NCBI GenBank assembly: GCA_010909165.1
Contig: MU008160.1
Coordinates: forward strand, 310,001-374,000
Direction of reading: 5' to 3'
Source of the DNA: Anthoceros angustus
Taxonomy: Eukaryota > Plantae > Anthocerotophyta
DNA: 64,000 nucleotides
Shown: positions 14,836 through 32,427 of the stretch, piece after piece
How positions within the stretch are numbered: position 1 is the first letter of the stretch
How the letters are laid out: each line of letters opens with the position of its first letter
The notes under the pieces: generated by a model
Told to the model about the DNA's origin: nothing
The model's input: only the letters and a program-made list of their open reading frames with translations
Databases searched by the model: none
Position numbers and translations under genes: made by a program

Positions 14836-15165
14836 TAGGAGTGTTCAAGAGACCAAACGCTAGATTCTCGGCCCTCTCAAAGCACTTCTTCCTGTTCCTT
14901 CTAGATTCTCAGCATGACATTAGGAGTGTTCTGTTGAAGAGACCAAACGCCATGCCATTAGGAGTGTTCAAGAGACCAAACGCTAGAGCTAGATTCTCAG
15001 CATGCCCTCAAAGCACTTCTTCATGCCCTCAAAGCACTTCTTCCTGTTCCTTCTAGATTCTCAGCATGCCCTCAAAGCACTTCTTCCTCATGCCCTCAAA
15101 GCACTTCTTCCTGTTCCTTCTAGATTCTCAGCATGCCCTCAAAGCACTTCTTCCTGTTCCTTCTC
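14812..15165. repeat. Modular repeat array of shuffled short modules
   Basis: Modules gccattaggagtgttcaagagaccaaacgc, tagattctcagcatgccctcaaagcacttcttc and ctgttccttc recur in varying order. Confidence 0.9.
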
Positions 15166-15431
15166 AGACATTGGCTTCAGGACTAACTTTCCTGCTTTAG
15201 ACGTGCATTCGTGCTCCCTACCTTGAGGGCAATCTCGTCTCGTGGGGGCACATCGCTGGGACTCCATCCTCCGCGGCACTCCCGCCTCTACGTGTGCATA
15301 ATCACGTATACGGTATGTTCGAACTTTCCTCGTATAGGCTTATCGCGTAGAGCTACGCATCGGCCGAGAGTCGAACCCGAATCAGCGCTGGAGGGAAAGA
15401 TCATGCTACCAACAAACCACCGGGCCCATCT

Positions 15432-16310
15432 TTACAAGAAAACGCGCTCCATCTCCGCGGCAACCCGCATGCCGGCTGCCCGGACAGCAAAAGAGGCATG
15501 GGAGAACGGAAACCGGGCGGGATTGGACCAGTTGAGATGGATGAAGCGCACCTTGGACTGTTCCTCTTCCGGCAGACTGATGGCAAATCGGGCCATGGAA
15601 GACGCGATGGTGGGGTGCGGGATATCGCTCATATCCCGCCCCGGGAGCTCGCCCTGGTCGAAGAACGTCCCGTCCAGGTACGCCACATCCACCTCCCGGA
15701 TTTCATCTTCAATCCGCACGCCTTCCTTGTCCCAGTCCTCCCACCGGTCGATGTCCGGGATGAAGAGCGCCCGTCGGCTGGGGCCTTCCACCGAAACCCA
15801 CCACCTCCGAGAACTCCTGCCGGTGGGGCACCAGGAACGGCGTGACCCGCAGCCGGGGTGAGCTCCACAGTTTGCCTATCCGCCATCTCCCGGATCTCGA
15901 TGTTGCGCAGGCCAGCTGGCTCCACGGCCCGTTGGTCGCCAGGAAGCTGCCCATGCGCGGCATGGCGTGGACCGGGACAGAGGATGTTCCCATGGCCTCC
16001 CGACCCAGGAACATGAGCCCGGTGTAGTGCCCTATGTGGCGTGGGTGAGCAGGATTCCGGACAGAGGAAGGTCCGTGGTGCGGAAAACGGTGGAGAATCG
16101 GTGCAGCTGGTCGCGGAAATCCGGTGTTGCTTCCAGCAGAAATCGCTTCCCTGCGATCCTGTCCACCACGCCGATGCATGTCGCGGTGCGGCGGAGGGTT
16201 GGGTCGGCCCAAGCTGGGTCGTCGTCGTGGCCTGCCTGCGGCGCGCCCCCGTCTTGTCCCGACCCGAGCACCACCAGCTCCACCGCGCTAGGATTGTCAG
16301 AGTCCGCCAT
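15432..16310 (-). CDS. pqqB-like: Bacterial-type PqqB-like metallo-beta-lactamase-fold hydrolase, intronless, about 290 aa after indel correction
   Basis: Joined frames: VVLGSGQDGGAPQAG...FLLEATPDFRDQL...LLTHAHIGHYTGLMFLGREAMG...NGPWSQL...VTPFLVPHRQEFSEVVGF.VEGPSRRALFIPDIDRW...YLDGTFF..GELPGRDMSDIPHP...FIHLNWSNP. About four frameshift points (near 16035, 15905, 15850, 15790), all at C/G runs. Confidence 0.85.
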
Positions 16311-16414
16311 CGCTCACGCAAAGACAGCTCCTTGGAGCTCGGCTATGGAAGACGAAGAAGTTGGTACAGAGCTAAAATTATTCACTAAATATCTACTATA
16401 ATGCTAAAATTGAA

Positions 16415-17529
16415 TCAAGCCCCGCTTTCAGCCATGCGCTTGGAGATGGCCTTGGCAGCCTCCTTCGTCTCCCTGCTGATGATGCGGAGTTGGGTCAGGA
16501 GCTTGAGCCTCTGTGGGTTGTTCTTCTGCCGATCCACGTCTAGAATCATCCTGTTTAGAAGGGTGAAGAAGTAGCTGTCTGGAGCCAGGTAATCGACTTG
16601 GCTCTTCATCGTTGCCACTCGGTCCGAGGGAGTTTTGTCTCTCATCAGCTGCACAAGCACCGGGAGATTCTTTGTTTGATGAAGTTTTGGTTCTTGAAGA
16701 GAAGCAGACTTTTGATTCTCGATTTGTCTGGGAGAGGCTTACCTGATTCAGAAGCCGGATCTCTGGCCGGAGGGTCCTCTCCTTCTCTGACATGGCTATT
16801 CGGAGGGTTGTTTCGATTTGGTTCATCACCTGGAGGTTACCTTCCTTCTTGGCCTTTCTACCAATGCAGCAAGTGTTAGGTCAGATGTAAGGCGGTGAGG
16901 AACATGAAAGAAGACAGCATGCTTGGATGAGGACAGAGAGAAAGAAAGAAGGGAATGCGTAGTACCAGCTCCAGATAAGTCGAGGCCACCATGAAGAAAT
17001 CCTCAGTCAAGAACTCCACGTACTTCTGAGCTGCCTGCTCCTTGTCCTCGGCTTTGAGGAGTTCAGCCAAAACCTCTGTGGCGTGCAGCTGGAGCTGCCT
17101 CAGTTCGGTGACCTTCTCTGCGAGCCAAGGACGAGCCGGCTCAGGAGAGCAGCTCTGGACATGAATTTTGGTGCTGAGAGAAGGAGGAGCTCACAGTTTC
17201 CTTACCTTTGTCTGACGCCTGGCACACAACTTGTGATGTCCTTACTCTCCGATGACAGAGATGGTTGTTGAGCAGCAGTCTGGCACTTCCACTTGCATTG
17301 ATTCGGCTTCCCAGAGATCCTGAAACGGATTGCAGCAAGAATGCACGTTTGTCAGGACCGAAGCTTGCAATCCATCCCGCCACGCACGCAAGACAGACAG
17401 CGAGACAGCCAAGAGTGTGAGCCTACCTGAGGGACTGAATGAAGCGGAGAAGGTGGAGGAACATGAACGGTGCACCGCCATAGCCGAAGGCGGTACTGAC
17501 ACTACCGCGAGCGCCATTTCCACGACCAT
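16415..17529 (-). CDS. Multi-exon protein of unknown function, probably plastid-targeted
   Basis: Ser/Ala-rich N-terminus MVVEMALAVVSVPPSAMAVHRSCSSTFSASFSPS; helical exons AQKYVEFLTEDFFMVASTYLEL / QIETTLRIAMSEKERTLRPEIRLLNQ / LMRDKTPSDRV...KRMAESGA* bounded by GT-AG introns. Exon limits approximate. Confidence 0.7.
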
Positions 17530-17586
17530 GGTGTAAAACCCTGCCGGAAAACTGGAAAGACGGCAGAGTTTTTTGGGTTGGCAAGG

Positions 17587-19121
17587 ATGCAGGCCAGAGG
17601 ACCGCTCTTTGATGCGCACTGCCACCTTCAGGATGCCCGAATCGCCCACTGTACCCCCCGGCTGCTGCAGTCTGCCAAGGAGGCGGGGGTGCAATGGTTT
17701 GCTGTCAACGGAACGTCTCAGGTTTGTGACCCATCAAGCCCTACCATGCTGACGCATGTCATTCTGCTCCTCTAACTGCAGGTTGTGACGGTGATTTGGT
17801 TGTGGGCAGGAGGACTGGGAGGACGTGAAGCAGCTTGGTGAGAAGCACCCATCTGTGATTCCATGCTTTGGTCTCCATCCTTGGTATGTGTGTGTTGAAG
17901 AAGGAACATGCGAATTGTGTCACGGATTAAGTTCGGATGTTCACGATGTGATGCTCGGATATCCACTATGACGTTCTCATCATCTTCCTGCTGGAAGAGC
18001 AGGTACCTTGAGAAGCGTTCTCCAGATTGGTTGTCCAGTTTGAGAGCCATGCTTGAGGCTGTCCCGACGGCTGCCTTGGGAGAGGTACGTTTCACACAGG
18101 CTCACTTTGGCCAGGGCTTTGGCCTAGTATGTTTTCCTGCTTCTGCCAGCTTTCAGTGCTTTGGTAATTTGATCTGCTACTATCGTGTTTCGCACCGGTC
18201 TGTCTGACTTGAGCTTGCATGGCAGGCGGGGCTTGACAGGAGCCCTCGTGGCAGTGCTTCGGATGAAGCAACACAGGTCTGGTTTACACCACTCTGTGCT
18301 GCCCTTTCCAGGCAACTCCGAGGTTGCATTTTGAACTGTCTGTACCTGTACTCAAACTGAGCTTCTATACCCAACAGGCAGAGATTCTAAGGCAGCAGCT
18401 TGAGCTAGCCAGGGAGCTCCATCGACCTGCTGCAATCCATTGCGTCCGAGCTTTTGGCGCTCTTCAAGAGCTTCTTCGGTAAGCTCCACATCTCACGATC
18501 CATACATTTCATCCTCTTCCACCTTCAGTCACCACTGATCCTATCACTTCCATGACTGGCAGAGACTTGGGCCCCTTTCCTCCTGGACTCATCCTCCATT
18601 CATACAGTGGTTCCGCGGAGATGGTCCGTGCTCTCTCCAATCACAACACATACTTCTCCTTCTCCGGCTTCATCACTGGCATGAAACCCAACAAGGCCAA
18701 GAACATCCTGAAAGCGGTATGAACATCACTCCATCACTTCATGACTTACACTCACTTACTCCTCTCACCTGGCAGGTACCCTGGGACAGGCTCCTGCTAG
18801 AGACAGACTCTCCAGACGCACTGCCCAACGTGGACCCCAACTCCTTGTCACCCATTCCAGAGCCCCTGCCGACAGCAACACAGTCGTGAAGACTCTGAAC
18901 CATCCTTCAAACATCCGATCTGTGAGCCTTCTGACCAGCAACTCTTCCTCCTCAGCCAGTCCCCACAACAGGGCATAAACAACCCTCATTCTTCTCCTGT
19001 TTTGCAGGTTCTTTCCATCGTTTCCTCTCACCTGGGGAAAAGCGAAGAGGAAGTCGGTGCTGCCACTTACCAGAATGCCATCCGTCTCTTCTCGTTCCCT
19101 GGCTCCAAGCTGCTCTCGTAA
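17587..19121 (+). CDS. TatD: TatD-family deoxyribonuclease / metal-dependent hydrolase (multi-exon)
   Basis: FDAHCHLQD, FGLHPW, ALGE, IHCVRAFG, LHSYSGS, FSFSG, LLLETDSPD, NAIRLF; GT-AG introns; stop TAA at 19119-19121. Confidence 0.92.
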
Positions 19122-21276
19122 GCTCGTACCCGTTGCACAAGGGGAGAATGTACGGCTCAAATGGCAGGCAGGCAGACTCCAGGCTGGAGCCTGATGGCCA
19201 GATTGATGGGTCCATGTGCATCCAGCAGAAACCAGTCCAGTCTGCAGTACATCCTGCGAGAATTGGCGATGGGCCCGGGGAGTCGTCATCGATTATGCTG
19301 CACAGCCATCATCATCGCCGGGCCATCATATCCCGTCCCTGTATTTACTATTTCATAATTCAGACTCGTTTAAGTTCAATGCTCGTATAACGCGCGGTTA
19401 ACTGACCGCGGTTAGCCTAACCGTGGTCGCAGGCATAGGATTCGAAGATGGCGACCGTTTCTGCAGGTCATTCATGGCGAACGACTTCCAATACTCGACG
19501 GTCAGCATTCGTGCAATCCTCCCTCCAGTTCATTCAATTTCCGCTCCGTTCCGGTCGTGAAACGTTAACACGCCTGCCATCCGCATGCGCAGCTTGTTGG
19601 GCGATAGCGATGGCGATGGCAATGGCAATGGCGATCCATGTTGTCCCCATCTTTGATTCGCGATTTCCGTCCGCCCTCAGGATGCGCTCGCACGGAGCGT
19701 CCTCAGCTTGGCAGGCTCGTGGATTACTATGGAGTTTTGCGCCTTGACGTTTCCTCTCAAGGTGGGTAGCAATGCAGAAGCCTGGCTATGGCGGAGGAGT
19801 CACAGAGACGTCAGGACAGGAGGGTGTAAAGTGCAAACCTTGCTGGGAGCTGTTGGGACCTTGCTGGTCCGCATGCCGCATTCCCCTTGGAGCAGTGGAG
19901 CTTCATGTGTACATTTGTAGTTAGCTAGCTGCCTTGTCTATTCCTCTCTGACTTTGTCTGCCTGGAAGAGAGCGTGATCTGGCACGCTGGCGACAGTCCT
20001 GCGGTGTCCTTGCTCTGCTTGGTTTTGGGTGCGAGCTGCTGTTTTCTGGTCCCGTGCATTTGGTCTAGGGCTGGTCAGTGGTCAGTGTGTCACTCAGTTG
20101 GTGAGCGGCGTGCGGAACATCTGCTATCAGTTTAGCTTTGGGCAGGTACGTCGCAGAAAAGCAGGCAACGGGGAATGTGGTGATGCCGGGCTTGCTGTGA
20201 CTCTGCCCAACTCCAGCAGCTGCCTGGAGAATTCCCGGACGGCAGGCTAGCATTGCAGGCTGGAGTCCGGGGTGCCTCGTTAGTCTCTCTCTCGTTCTCC
20301 TTGCTTTTCACGCCAGAGTGCAACGAATTCCTTCGGTTTGTGTGAGCTTATCTGGCCTTACAACAGTGTCCTCTGCTCCGTGTTCCAGCTGCTGCTGGGC
20401 CTGCTATCTTCTGGGCTGCGATGAATTTGTGAGGTTTCAGACTTGACTGGCAGCGGCCACATCTGTGGTGCCGTCGCTGGTCCACCTCGGCGGAAGTACC
20501 TGACCTTGTGGGTCCTGCCTTCTTGCATCGGACTGCAGCATTCTTTGTCGTATTCAACTCACCCCTCCGGCCACCTCTGTCGTCCACACTCTCTCTCCCA
20601 ACTTTTGAATCAGTCCCTGTTCTCACTACTGCCCGACAGCAGATCTTCTGCCCCTGCTTCCCAGTCTCCTGCCGTCGCACCATCTCCTGCCGTCTCTCCT
20701 CATCTGCTTTCCATCGACGCTGTATGTGTGACCAGTGCTTGGTACCTGTAGCTGCAGCTTGGTATTTTTGCTTGGTAGTAGGAGGCTGCTGGGACCAGTC
20801 GTGGAATTGGTACAGCCTCTGCCTTCTCCCGAGACCAGAATTTGCTGTTCATGTTGTGGGCTATTTCTATCAGGCGCTTGGGTGGGCGGGCGGAGCTCGT
20901 ACTGCAGCAGAGTGCTGTGTAGGAATAGTTGTCTCGAAAGTGGTCCCACCTGGGTCGCCAATGCGTGGTCTTGCGGGCCTCCCCGCAATGCGAAGAAGGC
21001 TGCAGCTCCGAGTTCGCTTCTTCTAGGTAGGACTCGCAGCTGAGGAAATGCGTGGCTGGAATAGCTGCAGAAAAATTCTTGCTCTTGCAACTGGGATGAT
21101 TTTTGTACTGGGTTGTGTTGGGCGTCCGGGATCGCAGCTTTGTGTTGAAGGCTGGGCCAGTGAAGTGGGTGGGAGATGGCGTCATGTCGTGAAGTAGTGT
21201 GTGAAGTGCGTATTGGGTGACTAGAAAGCTCTCGCAATGTGCAGGGATTTGTTGTGGGGTAGATCAGCTTGAGACC

Positions 21277-29340: not shown

Positions 29341-31548
29341 TTCATATGTACATCTATTTCTATGATAAGTACTACAGAGTAGAGGTTGTTTTAGAGGCTT
29401 TATGGCTGGTCTGGTGCCGAATAACTCCATTGAGAGAGTCCAGCCCGCGCTCAACAAAAGGCCAACATTGTTTCTCACTCAAGCCACAGTAGTGGTGATT
29501 TGCCCGCCTAGTATGTGGCTTAGTGATAGTGAAGGGCTCACCTAAATGGATCAATGATAGTGATATAGGGCAACAGTACACTCGACCCGGGAAGGTCAGT
29601 GAGAGTAATTCAGTGCACTGAAGTGGCACCCCAATTGGGACTTGCCTACCCTAGAATCACAAAGTCAATGAAATCTCATTACTAGGGTGCTTTTTATCTT
29701 GCGACTTAGTTTTTTTCTTGCTGAAAAATTTGTACACACTTTATAAAAAAGAGATATTACAATATAGTTCATCAAGGGAGTGTAATAAAAGGAGAACAAG
29801 CTTAGTTTTTCCTTGCTGGAAAAGTTTGTACACACTTTATGAAGAAGAACATCATCAAAGGAGTGTAATAAAAGCAGAACAAGTATATGAAATGTGTGAA
29901 ATGAACCTCCAGGAGGCAAACAAAAGGAACTCTCGGCCAACAACCTAAGCAAAGGAAGACTCAAAAAGACCCAAAAAGCGATAGAGATTGCACTGAGTCA
30001 TCCTAAGCATATATTCGCAAAGTTCTTATTTTCTCAAGCTTTGGTCTAAACTCCCCTGAATACACCAAGCATGAAATTTATGGTACTCAAATGATCTCTA
30101 AATATGGAAACATAGACGAAGAAAGAAACAAAAAAGGAAGGTACATAAATAGTGGGAACAGGTCAAATCCTAGAAGAGAAAAAAAAAAAGGTGATATAAA
30201 AAAAACAAAAAAAAACAAGAAGTTATTTTCGTCTTTATGGCTTATCAGCGAGTTATTGATGATAAGAGTTGGTAACAGTGATCCATGCCTTAACCAAAGC
30301 TCTAATACATGAACATACCAAGGTAGTTTTGTACACTCCACATGCCACCCGTGTGTTCTGTAAGAGTGTCGATCCAACCTTATGACATAGCGTTGCCACT
30401 TGAACTTCAAAGAAAATTAGTAAAAGAATAAATTACCTAAAATATATTAAAATTTTATAAATAAATAAATAAATTTTCAATCTCATACTTTTAGGTTCTT
30501 TGAGCCCTGATACCTTGAACTAATTACCAAATATACTAGACTAGTATTAGTAGAATATTGTATATCATCGATATTAAGTGCATAATCCTCGATATTATAC
30601 TATACATGTAGTGTTCCTACATACCAAATTGTGGTGCCGAGTAAAGCTAGGTATTGAGATATCTTATTAGGAGTAGTTGTGTGCTGTGTGTTGTGGTATC
30701 TTTTTAAGTTTTGTGAGTTTGTTGTATTGTTTATCATAGATTTAATTTATCCTCTTCCATGGTTTAACCCTTGCGAGTTCAGATGGAAGCTTGATAGCTG
30801 TAGAATTTCAAAGTGAATGCTTGCAAAAGACGACCAAGCTTCCGTGATTTCGTAGCACTTAGCTCTTGCTAAGTTCTACGAATGGGCGGAAGCTTGGCCG
30901 TCTCATATCTGCACATGGAGAATCAACGCGCGTAACACATTAGCGGGACTGACCCTCATGCGGCTTGTTTTTCTAATTAGATTTCTACATACAAGCAGAG
31001 CTGCATTTATGCCGGTGTTTTCGCATGAGCATCGACCCGACGCGACGATCGGCTCCCGTTCTTTCACTGCGATTCTTCTTACAATAGGCATTTCAGTCTG
31101 GTTTGTTATCAATTCTCAATCACATCCTTTGTCTTACCCTACAAACGATCCGGCAGACTGTGCGCAAACCCATGAACCAAAAACCAGACTCCCATCCACA
31201 CCGGAATCCCATTACACAACGAAATCGACCTCACTGAGGCTTGAAGGAAACAGGAGCGGGCAATCCCGCTTCTCAAAAAAAAAAAAGCGGTTTTCTGCCG
31301 CCGTGCCCTGATCCCCTGATCACCATGGGCAGACTGCAGCCTTGGCGAAACCAGCCTTATTAGAATTATTCGTGTAGAAAATTAAGTAAACTGACTTAAC
31401 CTTCATTAACTAACGTCATACTCGAACAGCCCTAAACCTCGACTGGCTTTCGGTTTGTCGCTTTGCAGTGCGAAGGAGGTGGAGGATGGCGTCTGCGTAG
31501 CGCTTTGCAGACTGGACTCGGCCTTCGGGGCCTCCGTTGGGGGGAGGG

Positions 31549-32427
31549 ATGTCGAAGGTAGTGAAAGCGGTATCGAGGGTGCCAAGGAAGAATCGTTTCG
31601 GATCCCACGAGAGCCTGCTTCGATCTAGCGGCTGGCTGGCGGCCAAGCCGTCTGCAGAGTCAGGTCCGGGAGAAGCAGATGCTGGAAGCAGGTCCACGCC
31701 GTCCTTGACGTACTTGGCCATGCTGCATTATTTCCGTTGTAAGAACCACCTGGGGTTCAACGCGGATTCTGTTCTACAGTCTGTTAGCCAATTTGTGAAG
31801 GATGGCGGCGATCCGCCGAGTGTTTCCCGGGCAATCACGGGTGCTGCAGCGGTGAGAAGAGAAGCCAATGTTGCTGGCGGCGCGAGCTATTCCAGATTGC
31901 TGCATCAGGATGTGAACTTGAAGCAGTATTTGAGCACGGTACAGCCTCCAAGGAAAAACTTCACCGGGTTACGTCCCGGTAGGGTTGTTGTTCATCACTA
32001 CCCGCAGAAGACGGCTGTCCATGTTTTCACTCCGGATGAAGTCGCGCCGCAAACCTTGAAGCAAGTGGCGTCGGTGTTGTCGGCTGCTTCGAATTGTAGT
32101 GTCGTTTTGAGAGCTGTGAAGATGCAGTCGATCTACCAGAGTGCTTCCTTGATCGCGCAGGACATCTGTTTGCAGTTAGAGCAGAGGAAGCAGTTTCGGA
32201 GCATCACGCAAGCACTTTTCAGGCAGTTGAAACGGGAACCGTATGTGGAGGGAATCCGAGTGATATGCTCAGGTAGGATTAACGGTGCGCTGATAGCTCG
32301 GAGTGAAAGACGAGGTTATGGTCCTCTTACTTTGCAGTCTTTCAGCGCCAAGGTCGATTACGCTCAGGCTCAAGCCCAGCTTCCTTACGGTATCCTTGGA
32401 ATCAAGGTTTGGGTGAGCTATGTGTAG
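31549..32427 (+). CDS. rps3: Nuclear-encoded mitochondrial ribosomal protein S3
   Basis: YSRLLHQDVNLKQYLSTVQPP..TGLRPGRVVVHHYPQKT matches the plant mt Rps3 N-terminus; GIRVICSGRINGA.IARSE..G...KVDYAQA...YGILGIKVWVSY matches the S3 C-terminus. About 110-aa N-terminal extension; intronless CDS. Confidence 0.92.
   Translation: MSKVVKAVSRVPRKNRFGSHESLLRSSGWLAAKPSAESGPGEADAGSRSTPSLTYLAMLHYFRCKNHLGFNADSVLQSVSQFVKDGGDPPSVSRAITGAAAVRREANVAGGASYSRLLHQDVNLKQYLSTVQPPRKNFTGLRPGRVVVHHYPQKTAVHVFTPDEVAPQTLKQVASVLSAASNCSVVLRAVKMQSIYQSASLIAQDICLQLEQRKQFRSITQALFRQLKREPYVEGIRVICSGRINGALIARSERRGYGPLTLQSFSAKVDYAQAQAQLPYGILGIKVWVSYV

Follow-up and report, generated by a model that had tools for sequence, protein, structure and literature searches.

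Is a solitary intronless reading frame of bacterial type, lying among spliced genes in the genome assembly of the hornwort Anthoceros angustus, a bacterial gene that the plant has acquired and kept, and what kind of protein would it encode? The frame is found in a 64,000-nucleotide stretch of contig MU008160.1 (hereafter the window) and had been described in an earlier note as a PqqB-like gene that reached the plant by horizontal gene transfer (HGT). PqqB is the iron hydroxylase of PQQ biosynthesis and has a metallo-beta-lactamase (MBL) fold. The explanation that we favor, with a probability of roughly 0.8, is that the locus is an intact, transcribed, alphaproteobacterium-derived nuclear gene of an Anthoceros-type hornwort and that it encodes a cytosolic PqqB-fold protein of about 295 amino acids belonging to a sister family of PqqB.

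An MBL-fold gene on the minus strand of the window

Translation of the minus strand from 16340 to 15400, frameshift-aware alignment and comparison with homologs confirmed a coding signal for a bacterial-type MBL-fold gene at 15432..16310 (minus strand). The ORF opens with an ATG at 16310 and ends with a stop at 15432-15434, and its translation contains the motifs VLGSGQDGGAPQ, HIGHYTGL, VPHR, FIPDIDRW, DGTFF and HLNWSNP, so the motifs that had been listed for it are present where they had been placed. An in-frame stop lies two codons 5′ of the ATG, which leaves the protein without an N-terminal extension. As assembled, the ORF is 879 nt long and contains four frame breaks, with the frame order running 0>2>1>2>0 along its length; the read-corrected ORF measures 885-888 nt and encodes 294-295 amino acids.

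The frame breaks are assembly errors

Break positions were taken from a frameshift-aware alignment to three relatives (approximately 16039, 15905-15912, 15847-15856 and 15792) and were compared with assembled contigs, rather than raw reads, of four public runs aligned to positions 15160-19400. Two of the runs come from the window's own species (X1, DNA; X2, RNA-derived) and two from a sister species (X22, DNA; X3, RNA-derived). The first break (16037..16040, minus strand) falls within THA/HIGH, where the window is short of one G/C in a run; contigs of all four runs add a G behind 16037, and only once this break is closed is THAHIGHYTGL complete. The second (15905..15912, minus strand) follows NGPWSQL and is complex, with no plain homopolymer slip. 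X1 and X3 contigs have a G>A change at 15911, and X22 combines G>A at 15910/15911 with an inserted CCCA. This break thus consists of a substitution plus an insertion, and an insertion of 4 nt would fit a total of 9 extra letters, giving a protein of 295 amino acids. At the third break (15847..15856, minus strand), where VELTP meets RLRVTPF, the window has too short a G run; GG is added behind 15854 in X2 and X22, and no such insertion is displayed for the DNA contigs of X1. The fourth (15792..15793, minus strand) separates EVVGF from (R)VEGP. Here the window lacks a CG that all four runs add behind 15792, which brings back a conserved Arg (translation VGFRVEGP).

Relative to the window, the net number of extra letters over the ORF span is 9 in X2, 9 in X3 and 3 in X1, all multiples of three. 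With the three insertions in place and a placeholder N at the second break, the frame stays open for 294 codons and THAHIGHYTGL is restored. Because short-read and RNA-derived contigs add the missing letters and the corrected frame is open, the four breaks are errors of the long-read assembly. The earlier note had expected the gene to be intact and had proposed polishing with short reads. The open corrected frame and the length differences bear out this expectation, contig letters close three of the breaks, and no confirmed frameshift was seen in the contigs. Its statement that all four indels sit at C/G runs holds for the sites at 16037, 15854 and 15792 and fails for the complex site at 15905-15912.

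Were the gene a decaying pseudogene, in which a real transfer had been followed by true frameshifts and loss of function, the four breaks could be taken as assembled, and both the X1 contigs without a displayed GG at 15854 and the complexity of the break at 15905-15912 would be in keeping with it. The contig insertions that close three breaks, the length differences of +9, +9 and +3 and the open corrected frame speak against such decay, to which we return with the sister-species comparison below.

In nucleotide substitutions, X1 contigs differ from the window only at 15911, 17527, 18065 and 18319 (three C>T and one G>A). Either errors in the assembly or allelic variation could account for them.

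The gene is linked to spliced plant genes and present in RNA-derived contigs

The longest view of the locus comes from an X2 contig of 2,855 nt (record 10), which runs unspliced over 15418-16648, including the whole MBL ORF, before leaving out four CT..AC intervals of the upstream gene and, beyond them, GT..AG intervals of a divergent TatD-like gene. Since the introns of the neighbors are skipped, this contig comes from spliced RNA. A contig of the sister species (X3 record 19) contains the same run from the ORF into spliced exons. RNA-derived contigs traverse the ORF unspliced, so it has no intron, in agreement with the earlier description.

The upstream neighbor (16415..17529, minus strand) is a spliced plant gene whose five exons (17529-17426, 17318-17206, 17117-16965, 16852-16743 and 16648-16415) are defined by four joints in X2 and X3 that read CT..AC, or GT..AG in the orientation of the gene. 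Across these joints the reading frame stays open for about 237 amino acids, with a Ser/Ala-rich N-terminus, and an exon-by-exon scan of this gene found no Pfam family. Between its stop and the MBL ATG lies an AT-rich spacer of 104 nt (16311..16414, minus strand; 39% GC) that the RNA-derived contigs, X2 record 10 and X3 record 19, cover unbroken. The divergent neighbor (17578..19341, plus strand) has seven GT..AG joints and is TatD-like by a match of its first exon to TatD_DNase (E=0.0014). Further plant genes recognized in the window by Pfam encode VQ, phloem protein 2 (PP2), mitochondrial carrier (Mito_carr), anthranilate phosphoribosyltransferase and DTW proteins, and no bacterial gene flanks the MBL ORF. 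The contig joints and the Pfam scan of the window ORFs thus agree with the claim that the neighbors are spliced plant genes.

As ORF-containing contigs continue into spliced plant exons 104 nt upstream, the MBL gene is part of the plant genome and is transcribed. Its physical linkage to spliced plant genes is observed in two species, and the RNA-derived contigs of both contain the ORF, which bears on the call for RNA data made when the gene was first described. Read-through from the neighbor, or the merging of overlapping transcripts, is a possible route by which the ORF came to be in RNA contigs.

Bacterial contamination, or a chimeric join that stitched the ORF into a plant contig, is exceedingly unlikely given this linkage. 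An identity of about 68% to bacterial proteins, the lack of introns and a GC content above that of the surroundings would all be expected of a contaminant, and X1 DNA contigs do break at 16249-16266, where only a 49-nt piece bridges them. Independent assemblies from two species nonetheless contain the same junction between the ORF and a spliced exon 104 nt away, and no chimeric join with a bacterial contaminant was seen in the contigs. DNA contig depth in X1 is 13.6 over the MBL gene and equals that over its neighbors, bacterial flanking genes are absent, and a high-copy repeat of the plant is located 190 nt downstream. Identity to database proteins tops out at about 68%, which leaves no donor genome as a source of contamination.

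The repeat in question (15189..15241, no strand assigned) is a high-copy dispersed element of plant-genome type that was recognized in both species from summed contig depth and loose contig ends. Depth over it is about 1500 in X1 and about 6,000 in X22, compared with 14-70 nearby (13.6 in X1), and many loose contig ends fall at 15189-15241 in all four runs. A tandem repeat occupies 14989-15155 and comprises 2.5 copies of a 67-nt unit (97% matches) that is itself built from a 21-nt subunit. On the other side of the MBL gene, the upstream neighbor and the TatD-like gene are arranged head to head, with starts about 50 nt apart (17529 on the minus strand and approximately 17578 on the plus strand), and RNA-derived contigs of both species cross the gap between them (17426-17718) without interruption.

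The gene is conserved in a sister species

The sister species has the MBL gene at the same place, with about 93% nucleotide identity over the ORF. At least 29 substitutions separate the window from the RNA contig of the sister species, distributed 9/3/17 over the first, second and third codon positions. Among these 29 listed substitutions, 17 are synonymous, one of them only nominally since its codon contains the placeholder N, and the 12 replacements spare the conserved ligands. The codon-position bias together with the spared ligands makes a pattern unlike that of a pseudogene and, as far as sequence comparison can tell, the gene is probably under purifying selection. For the pseudogene reading, two joints in DNA contigs of the sister species (15909>16050 and 16157>16710) could be cited as deleted or rearranged forms of the gene. 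Set against the third-position bias between the species and the untouched ligands, we consider decay improbable and retain an intact gene as the preferred interpretation.

Contigs of the sister species also contain irregular joints that deserve description in their own right. One (15378>16456) skips the whole MBL gene and is weak, its short side amounting to only 22 letters. A 140-nt skip inside the ORF (15909>16050) occurs in both DNA and RNA-like runs, and the joint 16157>16710 has 23 foreign letters between its two sides. In this species the ORF and the segment 16438-16579 have a greater summed contig depth than the neighbors. The sister species may hold extra, partial or rearranged copies of the MBL gene.

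Phylogenetic analyses support acquisition from Pseudomonadota

An exhaustive HMMER search with a 119-aa C-terminal piece of the window protein returned 675 cluster representatives, the best of them 66% identical to the piece. With 317 proteins at E<=1e-10 from the C-terminal piece alone, the family assignment is far beyond chance. Word-based protein searches used three relatives (P0001, P0154 and P0208) as queries in place of the window gene. With thresholds of E<=1e-20 or 1e-30, each of them retrieved upward of 7,700 proteins, and more than 7,000 relatives fall within E<=1e-30. Among the best 120 matches per query, every named match is bacterial, with examples from Caulobacteraceae, Maricaulis, Parvularculaceae, Rhodothermales and Arenimonas. 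Plant and algal proteins, and named proteins of any other eukaryote, are absent from the best 120 of each of the three queries, and these lists thus contain none of the green-plant orthologs that would have spoken for descent within plants. A scan of GTDB species genomes placed the family in Pseudomonadota, Planctomycetota, Bacteroidota, Rhodothermota, Gemmatimonadota, Acidobacteriota and other groups, and sequence and shape searches of the Atlas returned prokaryotic clusters only, mostly bacterial and one mainly archaeal. P0208 and P0154 come closest to the window protein in its read-corrected form (67-68% identity), and the nearest named bacteria are Caulobacteraceae MAGs (about 65-68% amino acid identity).

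We built two trees, a quick one of 122 rows and a careful maximum-likelihood (ML) one of 63 rows, and their topologies agree. In the careful tree, the window gene is sister to P0208 (support 100/99). Two bacterial subclades, free of signal peptides as well, join the pair in a 12-row clade (96/89). This clade is contained in a 21-row clade (100/97) and then in a 26-row clade (100/99) that holds Caulobacteraceae proteins. The latter in turn lies within a 36-row clade (100/98), in which 10 of the 36 rows carry a taxon label, all of them Pseudomonadota. With lengths of 0.33 and 0.36, the end branches of the pair are near the tree median. Base composition also sets the gene apart: the MBL ORF has 64.5% GC and 80% GC3, compared with 52-62% GC and 50-68% GC3 in the plant genes of the window.

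Deep nesting in Pseudomonadota and foreign composition point to transfer from bacterium to plant rather than to vertical or organellar descent. The proposal of an HGT origin, for which an ML tree had been suggested as the check, is thus supported by nesting four supported nodes deep within Pseudomonadota that both trees recover. We conclude that horizontal acquisition of the MBL gene from Pseudomonadota is supported and that the donor was probably alphaproteobacterial. In the sequence of events that we envisage, a bacterium of the Pseudomonadota, most likely a Caulobacteraceae-related alphaproteobacterium, would have passed the gene to a hornwort, whose nucleus would have kept it intact, transcribed and under purifying selection, with the gene at the same place in the sister species.

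A probable alphaproteobacterial affinity of the donor-like clade could also be expected of a gene inherited vertically, either an old eukaryotic gene or one derived from the (alphaproteobacterial) mitochondrion and lost elsewhere, and the presence of the sister gene on a second, eukaryote-looking contig (L004) would suit such a history. We nonetheless judge it very unlikely. The pair sits four supported nodes inside a shallow bacterial clade, on branches of 0.33 and 0.36 that resemble those of its bacterial neighbors; identity to Caulobacteraceae-type proteins is 65-68%, a foreign GC3 has been kept, and the three best-120 lists are free of named eukaryotic proteins.

A sister sequence on a eukaryote-looking contig

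The sister sequence P0208 is a protein of 292 amino acids without a signal peptide, encoded on Logan contigs L004 and L005 from two consecutive runs (SRR33208241 and SRR33208242). Its ORF has 67% GC amid non-coding flanks of 49% GC and is convergent with a gene for a Tpt1-type RNA 2′-phosphotransferase, the look-alikes of which are eukaryotic clusters. Contig L004 thus looks eukaryotic. A comparison of its flanks with the window found nothing in common.

The pairing of P0208 with the window gene may reflect a single ancient transfer, a pair of transfers from donors that resembled each other, or movement of the gene among eukaryotes. It is conceivable, though we think it rather unlikely, that the hornwort gene and P0208 go back to one transfer. 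This would imply either long retention in eukaryotes or passage from eukaryote to eukaryote, for instance between a plant and a fungus or alga living in association with it, and would make theirs the first eukaryotic members of the HxHxGH family, with a chemistry of their own. If the second eukaryotic holder were named, the pair could put an age on the transfer or uncover passage of the gene from one eukaryote to another.

The protein is best placed in a sister family of PqqB

The earlier note called the protein PqqB-like, and PqqB is indeed the nearest family and the nearest fold. Scores, motif, Cys-rich segment and genomic neighbors all fail to identify it as PqqB itself. The N- and C-terminal pieces of the window protein score 24.5 and 35.1 bits against the PqqB model TIGR02108 (NCBIfam), and for the full-length relatives P0208, P0154 and P0001 the scores are 103-114 bits, all of them under the cut-off of 245. 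Against PF12706 (Lactamase_B_2), the C-terminal piece gives a weak match (16.1 bits, E=0.0087, cut-off 27) and the other pieces give none; the full-length relatives all carry PF12706 in precomputed annotation. A sequence search of the PDB with the 119-aa piece yielded matches to TLR2 only, which we discarded as chance.

For structure, we used a model of P0208 (pLDDT 95.5) as a 68%-identical stand-in for the window protein. Its top seven structural matches are PqqB (TM 0.79-0.82). The next matches (TM by query 0.61-0.70) are a PhnP-family diphosphatase, Apyc1, PhnP, a nucleotide-binding Brucella MBL protein and RNase Z. Residues H88, H90, H93, H163, D187 and H258 (P0208 numbering) are near-invariant in alignments of 11 and 60 relatives, and equivalents of all six are present in the window gene.

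Comparison with PqqB (4z7r, 4z67, 1xto and 6e13) reveals the same fold and a full-length collinear similarity at 21-23% identity to P0208. Common to both are an N-terminal GxxxGGxPQ, the motif-2 His, DGT, a further His ahead of the last helix region and (F/V)HxNxxNP. In the HMMER alignment to 4z7r, LLTHAHIGHYTGL of P0208 stands opposite LLTNGDVDHVAGL of PqqB. The family has HAHIGH (H-x-H-x-G-H) where PqqB has NGDVDH (N-x-D-x-D-H), and P0208 has GHDEDPGW where PqqB has the Cys-rich NCRCSICSLAW; at both of these distinguishing sites the window gene has the residues of P0208. The family furthermore retains two residues that are missing in the aligned PqqB, a His in motif 3 (VPHR) and an Asp in motif 4 (PDID), and in the inspected loci its gene is never beside pqqA, C, D or E. 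THAHIGHYTGL, which had been taken as a mark of the PqqB-like group, is therefore precisely where the protein departs from PqqB.

A true PqqB, an iron-dependent hydroxylase with which the plant would synthesize PQQ or a related quinone cofactor or assist in its synthesis, would explain why PqqB ranks first among both families and structures and why JGI pipelines label the bacterial relatives "PqqB". We give this reading very little credence. The scores of 24-35 bits for pieces and 103-114 bits for full-length kin contrast with the cut-off of 245, HxHxGH replaces NxDxDH, the Cys-rich segment is absent, and no pqq genes lie close by in the window or in the inspected loci. The observation that no other pqq gene is visible here is upheld by a Pfam scan, which found no pqq-type domain in the large ORFs of the window. 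On sequence grounds we thus favor placement of the protein in a large uncharacterized bacterial sister family of PqqB, outside PqqB proper. The motif pattern of this very large family, which pipelines mislabel as PqqB, speaks for another role.

Similarities to other MBL-fold enzymes concern the metal site. The PhnP family, Apyc1 and RNase Z (3g1p, 6b9v, 7u2r and 1y44) also have an H-x-H motif 2 and later His/Asp ligands, and P0154 has weak matches to PhnP and PRK02113 (E 1e-4 to 1e-9, far under the cut-offs). Compared with these enzymes, the protein is built on the larger PqqB plan, at about 295 amino acids. Hydrolytic MBLs carry an Asp in motif 2 (HxHxDH), and this Asp is replaced by an invariant Gly in the family. 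Because the canonical MBL ligands are kept and the next structural neighbors are phosphodiesterases, we tentatively suggest, at somewhat less than even odds, a metal-dependent hydrolase of an anionic ester (of the phosphodiester or sulfate ester type) in place of a PQQ-pathway hydroxylase. The gene product would in that case be a cytosolic protein of about 295 amino acids with a PqqB-type MBL fold, in which the canonical ligands (H-x-H-x-G-H, a later His, an Asp and the last His) would serve metal-dependent hydrolysis of such an ester. Anthoceros is transformable, which makes a knock-out combined with an assay of the recombinant enzyme feasible.

The absence of a transit peptide, as originally claimed, is a trait that the protein shares with neighboring bacterial subclades. 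About 70% of bacterial members have an N-terminal hydrophobic extension, and the subclades adjoining the plant gene lack it. Given that the adjacent bacterial subclades are also without an extension, the missing targeting peptide would have been inherited from the donor subclade and is no plant adaptation.

Genomic context of the bacterial relatives

Clustering of gene neighborhoods from 80 bacterial loci identified no conserved partner and no pqq gene; one cluster of neighbors from 10 loci proved to be an antisense artefact and was rejected. No PqqC, PqqD or PqqE domains were found in eight annotated bacterial loci. As no operon is conserved across the 80 loci, the hydrolase reading is weakly based.

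Context is more regular within individual subclades. In one of the nearest subclades, all three loci have an uptake operon of Porin_O_P and SBP_bac_11-type ABC genes, followed by the MBL gene and then by an RPE65 oxygenase gene. The Porin_O_P/ABC operon stands under an Rrf2 regulator, with the RPE65-type carotenoid oxygenase adjoining, in L088, L089 and the JGI contig of P0195. This Porin_O_P/ABC/RPE65 arrangement around the MBL gene makes up a gene cluster that has yet to be studied. In the second of the nearest subclades, the two loci both have a GFA-family gene next to the MBL gene, and forms with signal peptides are located between Nuc_deoxyrib_tr and MAPEG genes. Together, the bacterial context gives a weak hint of anionic-ester metabolism, weak because the loci are from related genomes.

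Relation to published surveys of horizontal transfer

Bacterial genes in bryophytes are well documented, and one further case alters no picture. The sections of the A. angustus genome paper that we used report 14 HGT families, of which the two alphaproteobacterial ones are a glyoxalase and a peroxiredoxin (PMC7027989), and a 2025 catalogue of streptophytes and bryophytes gives 1,809 HGT families in the sections used (PMC12513842). As described in those sections of the two papers, bryophyte HGT genes are intronless or intron-poor, GC-richer, of bacterial ancestry and expressed (PMC7027989; PMC12513842), and the gene described here has the same profile. The terms "lactamase", "PF12706" and "PqqB" are absent from the portions of the text and supplements of PMC7027989 that were covered, and the larger catalogue (PMC12513842) may already list the family. 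Literature searches on PqqB in plants or HGT, and on hornwort HGT with metallo-beta-lactamase, found nothing relevant, and Li et al., 2020 contains no HGT analysis.

According to the portion of its methods that we drew on, the A. angustus screen required predicted proteins of more than 150 amino acids (PMC7027989). The gene would fail this filter because its model is frame-broken. Intact transferred genes can be hidden in this way from protein-based HGT screens by indel-ridden long-read assemblies.

A further feature of the window

At some distance from the MBL gene, an ORF at 31537-32427 encodes a protein of 296 amino acids with Ribosomal_S3_C and VAR1 domains, of the mitochondrial rps3 type. 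An AT-rich block (28-31 kb, 34-39% GC) lies beside it. The region of this ORF may be an insertion of mitochondrial DNA in the nuclear genome.
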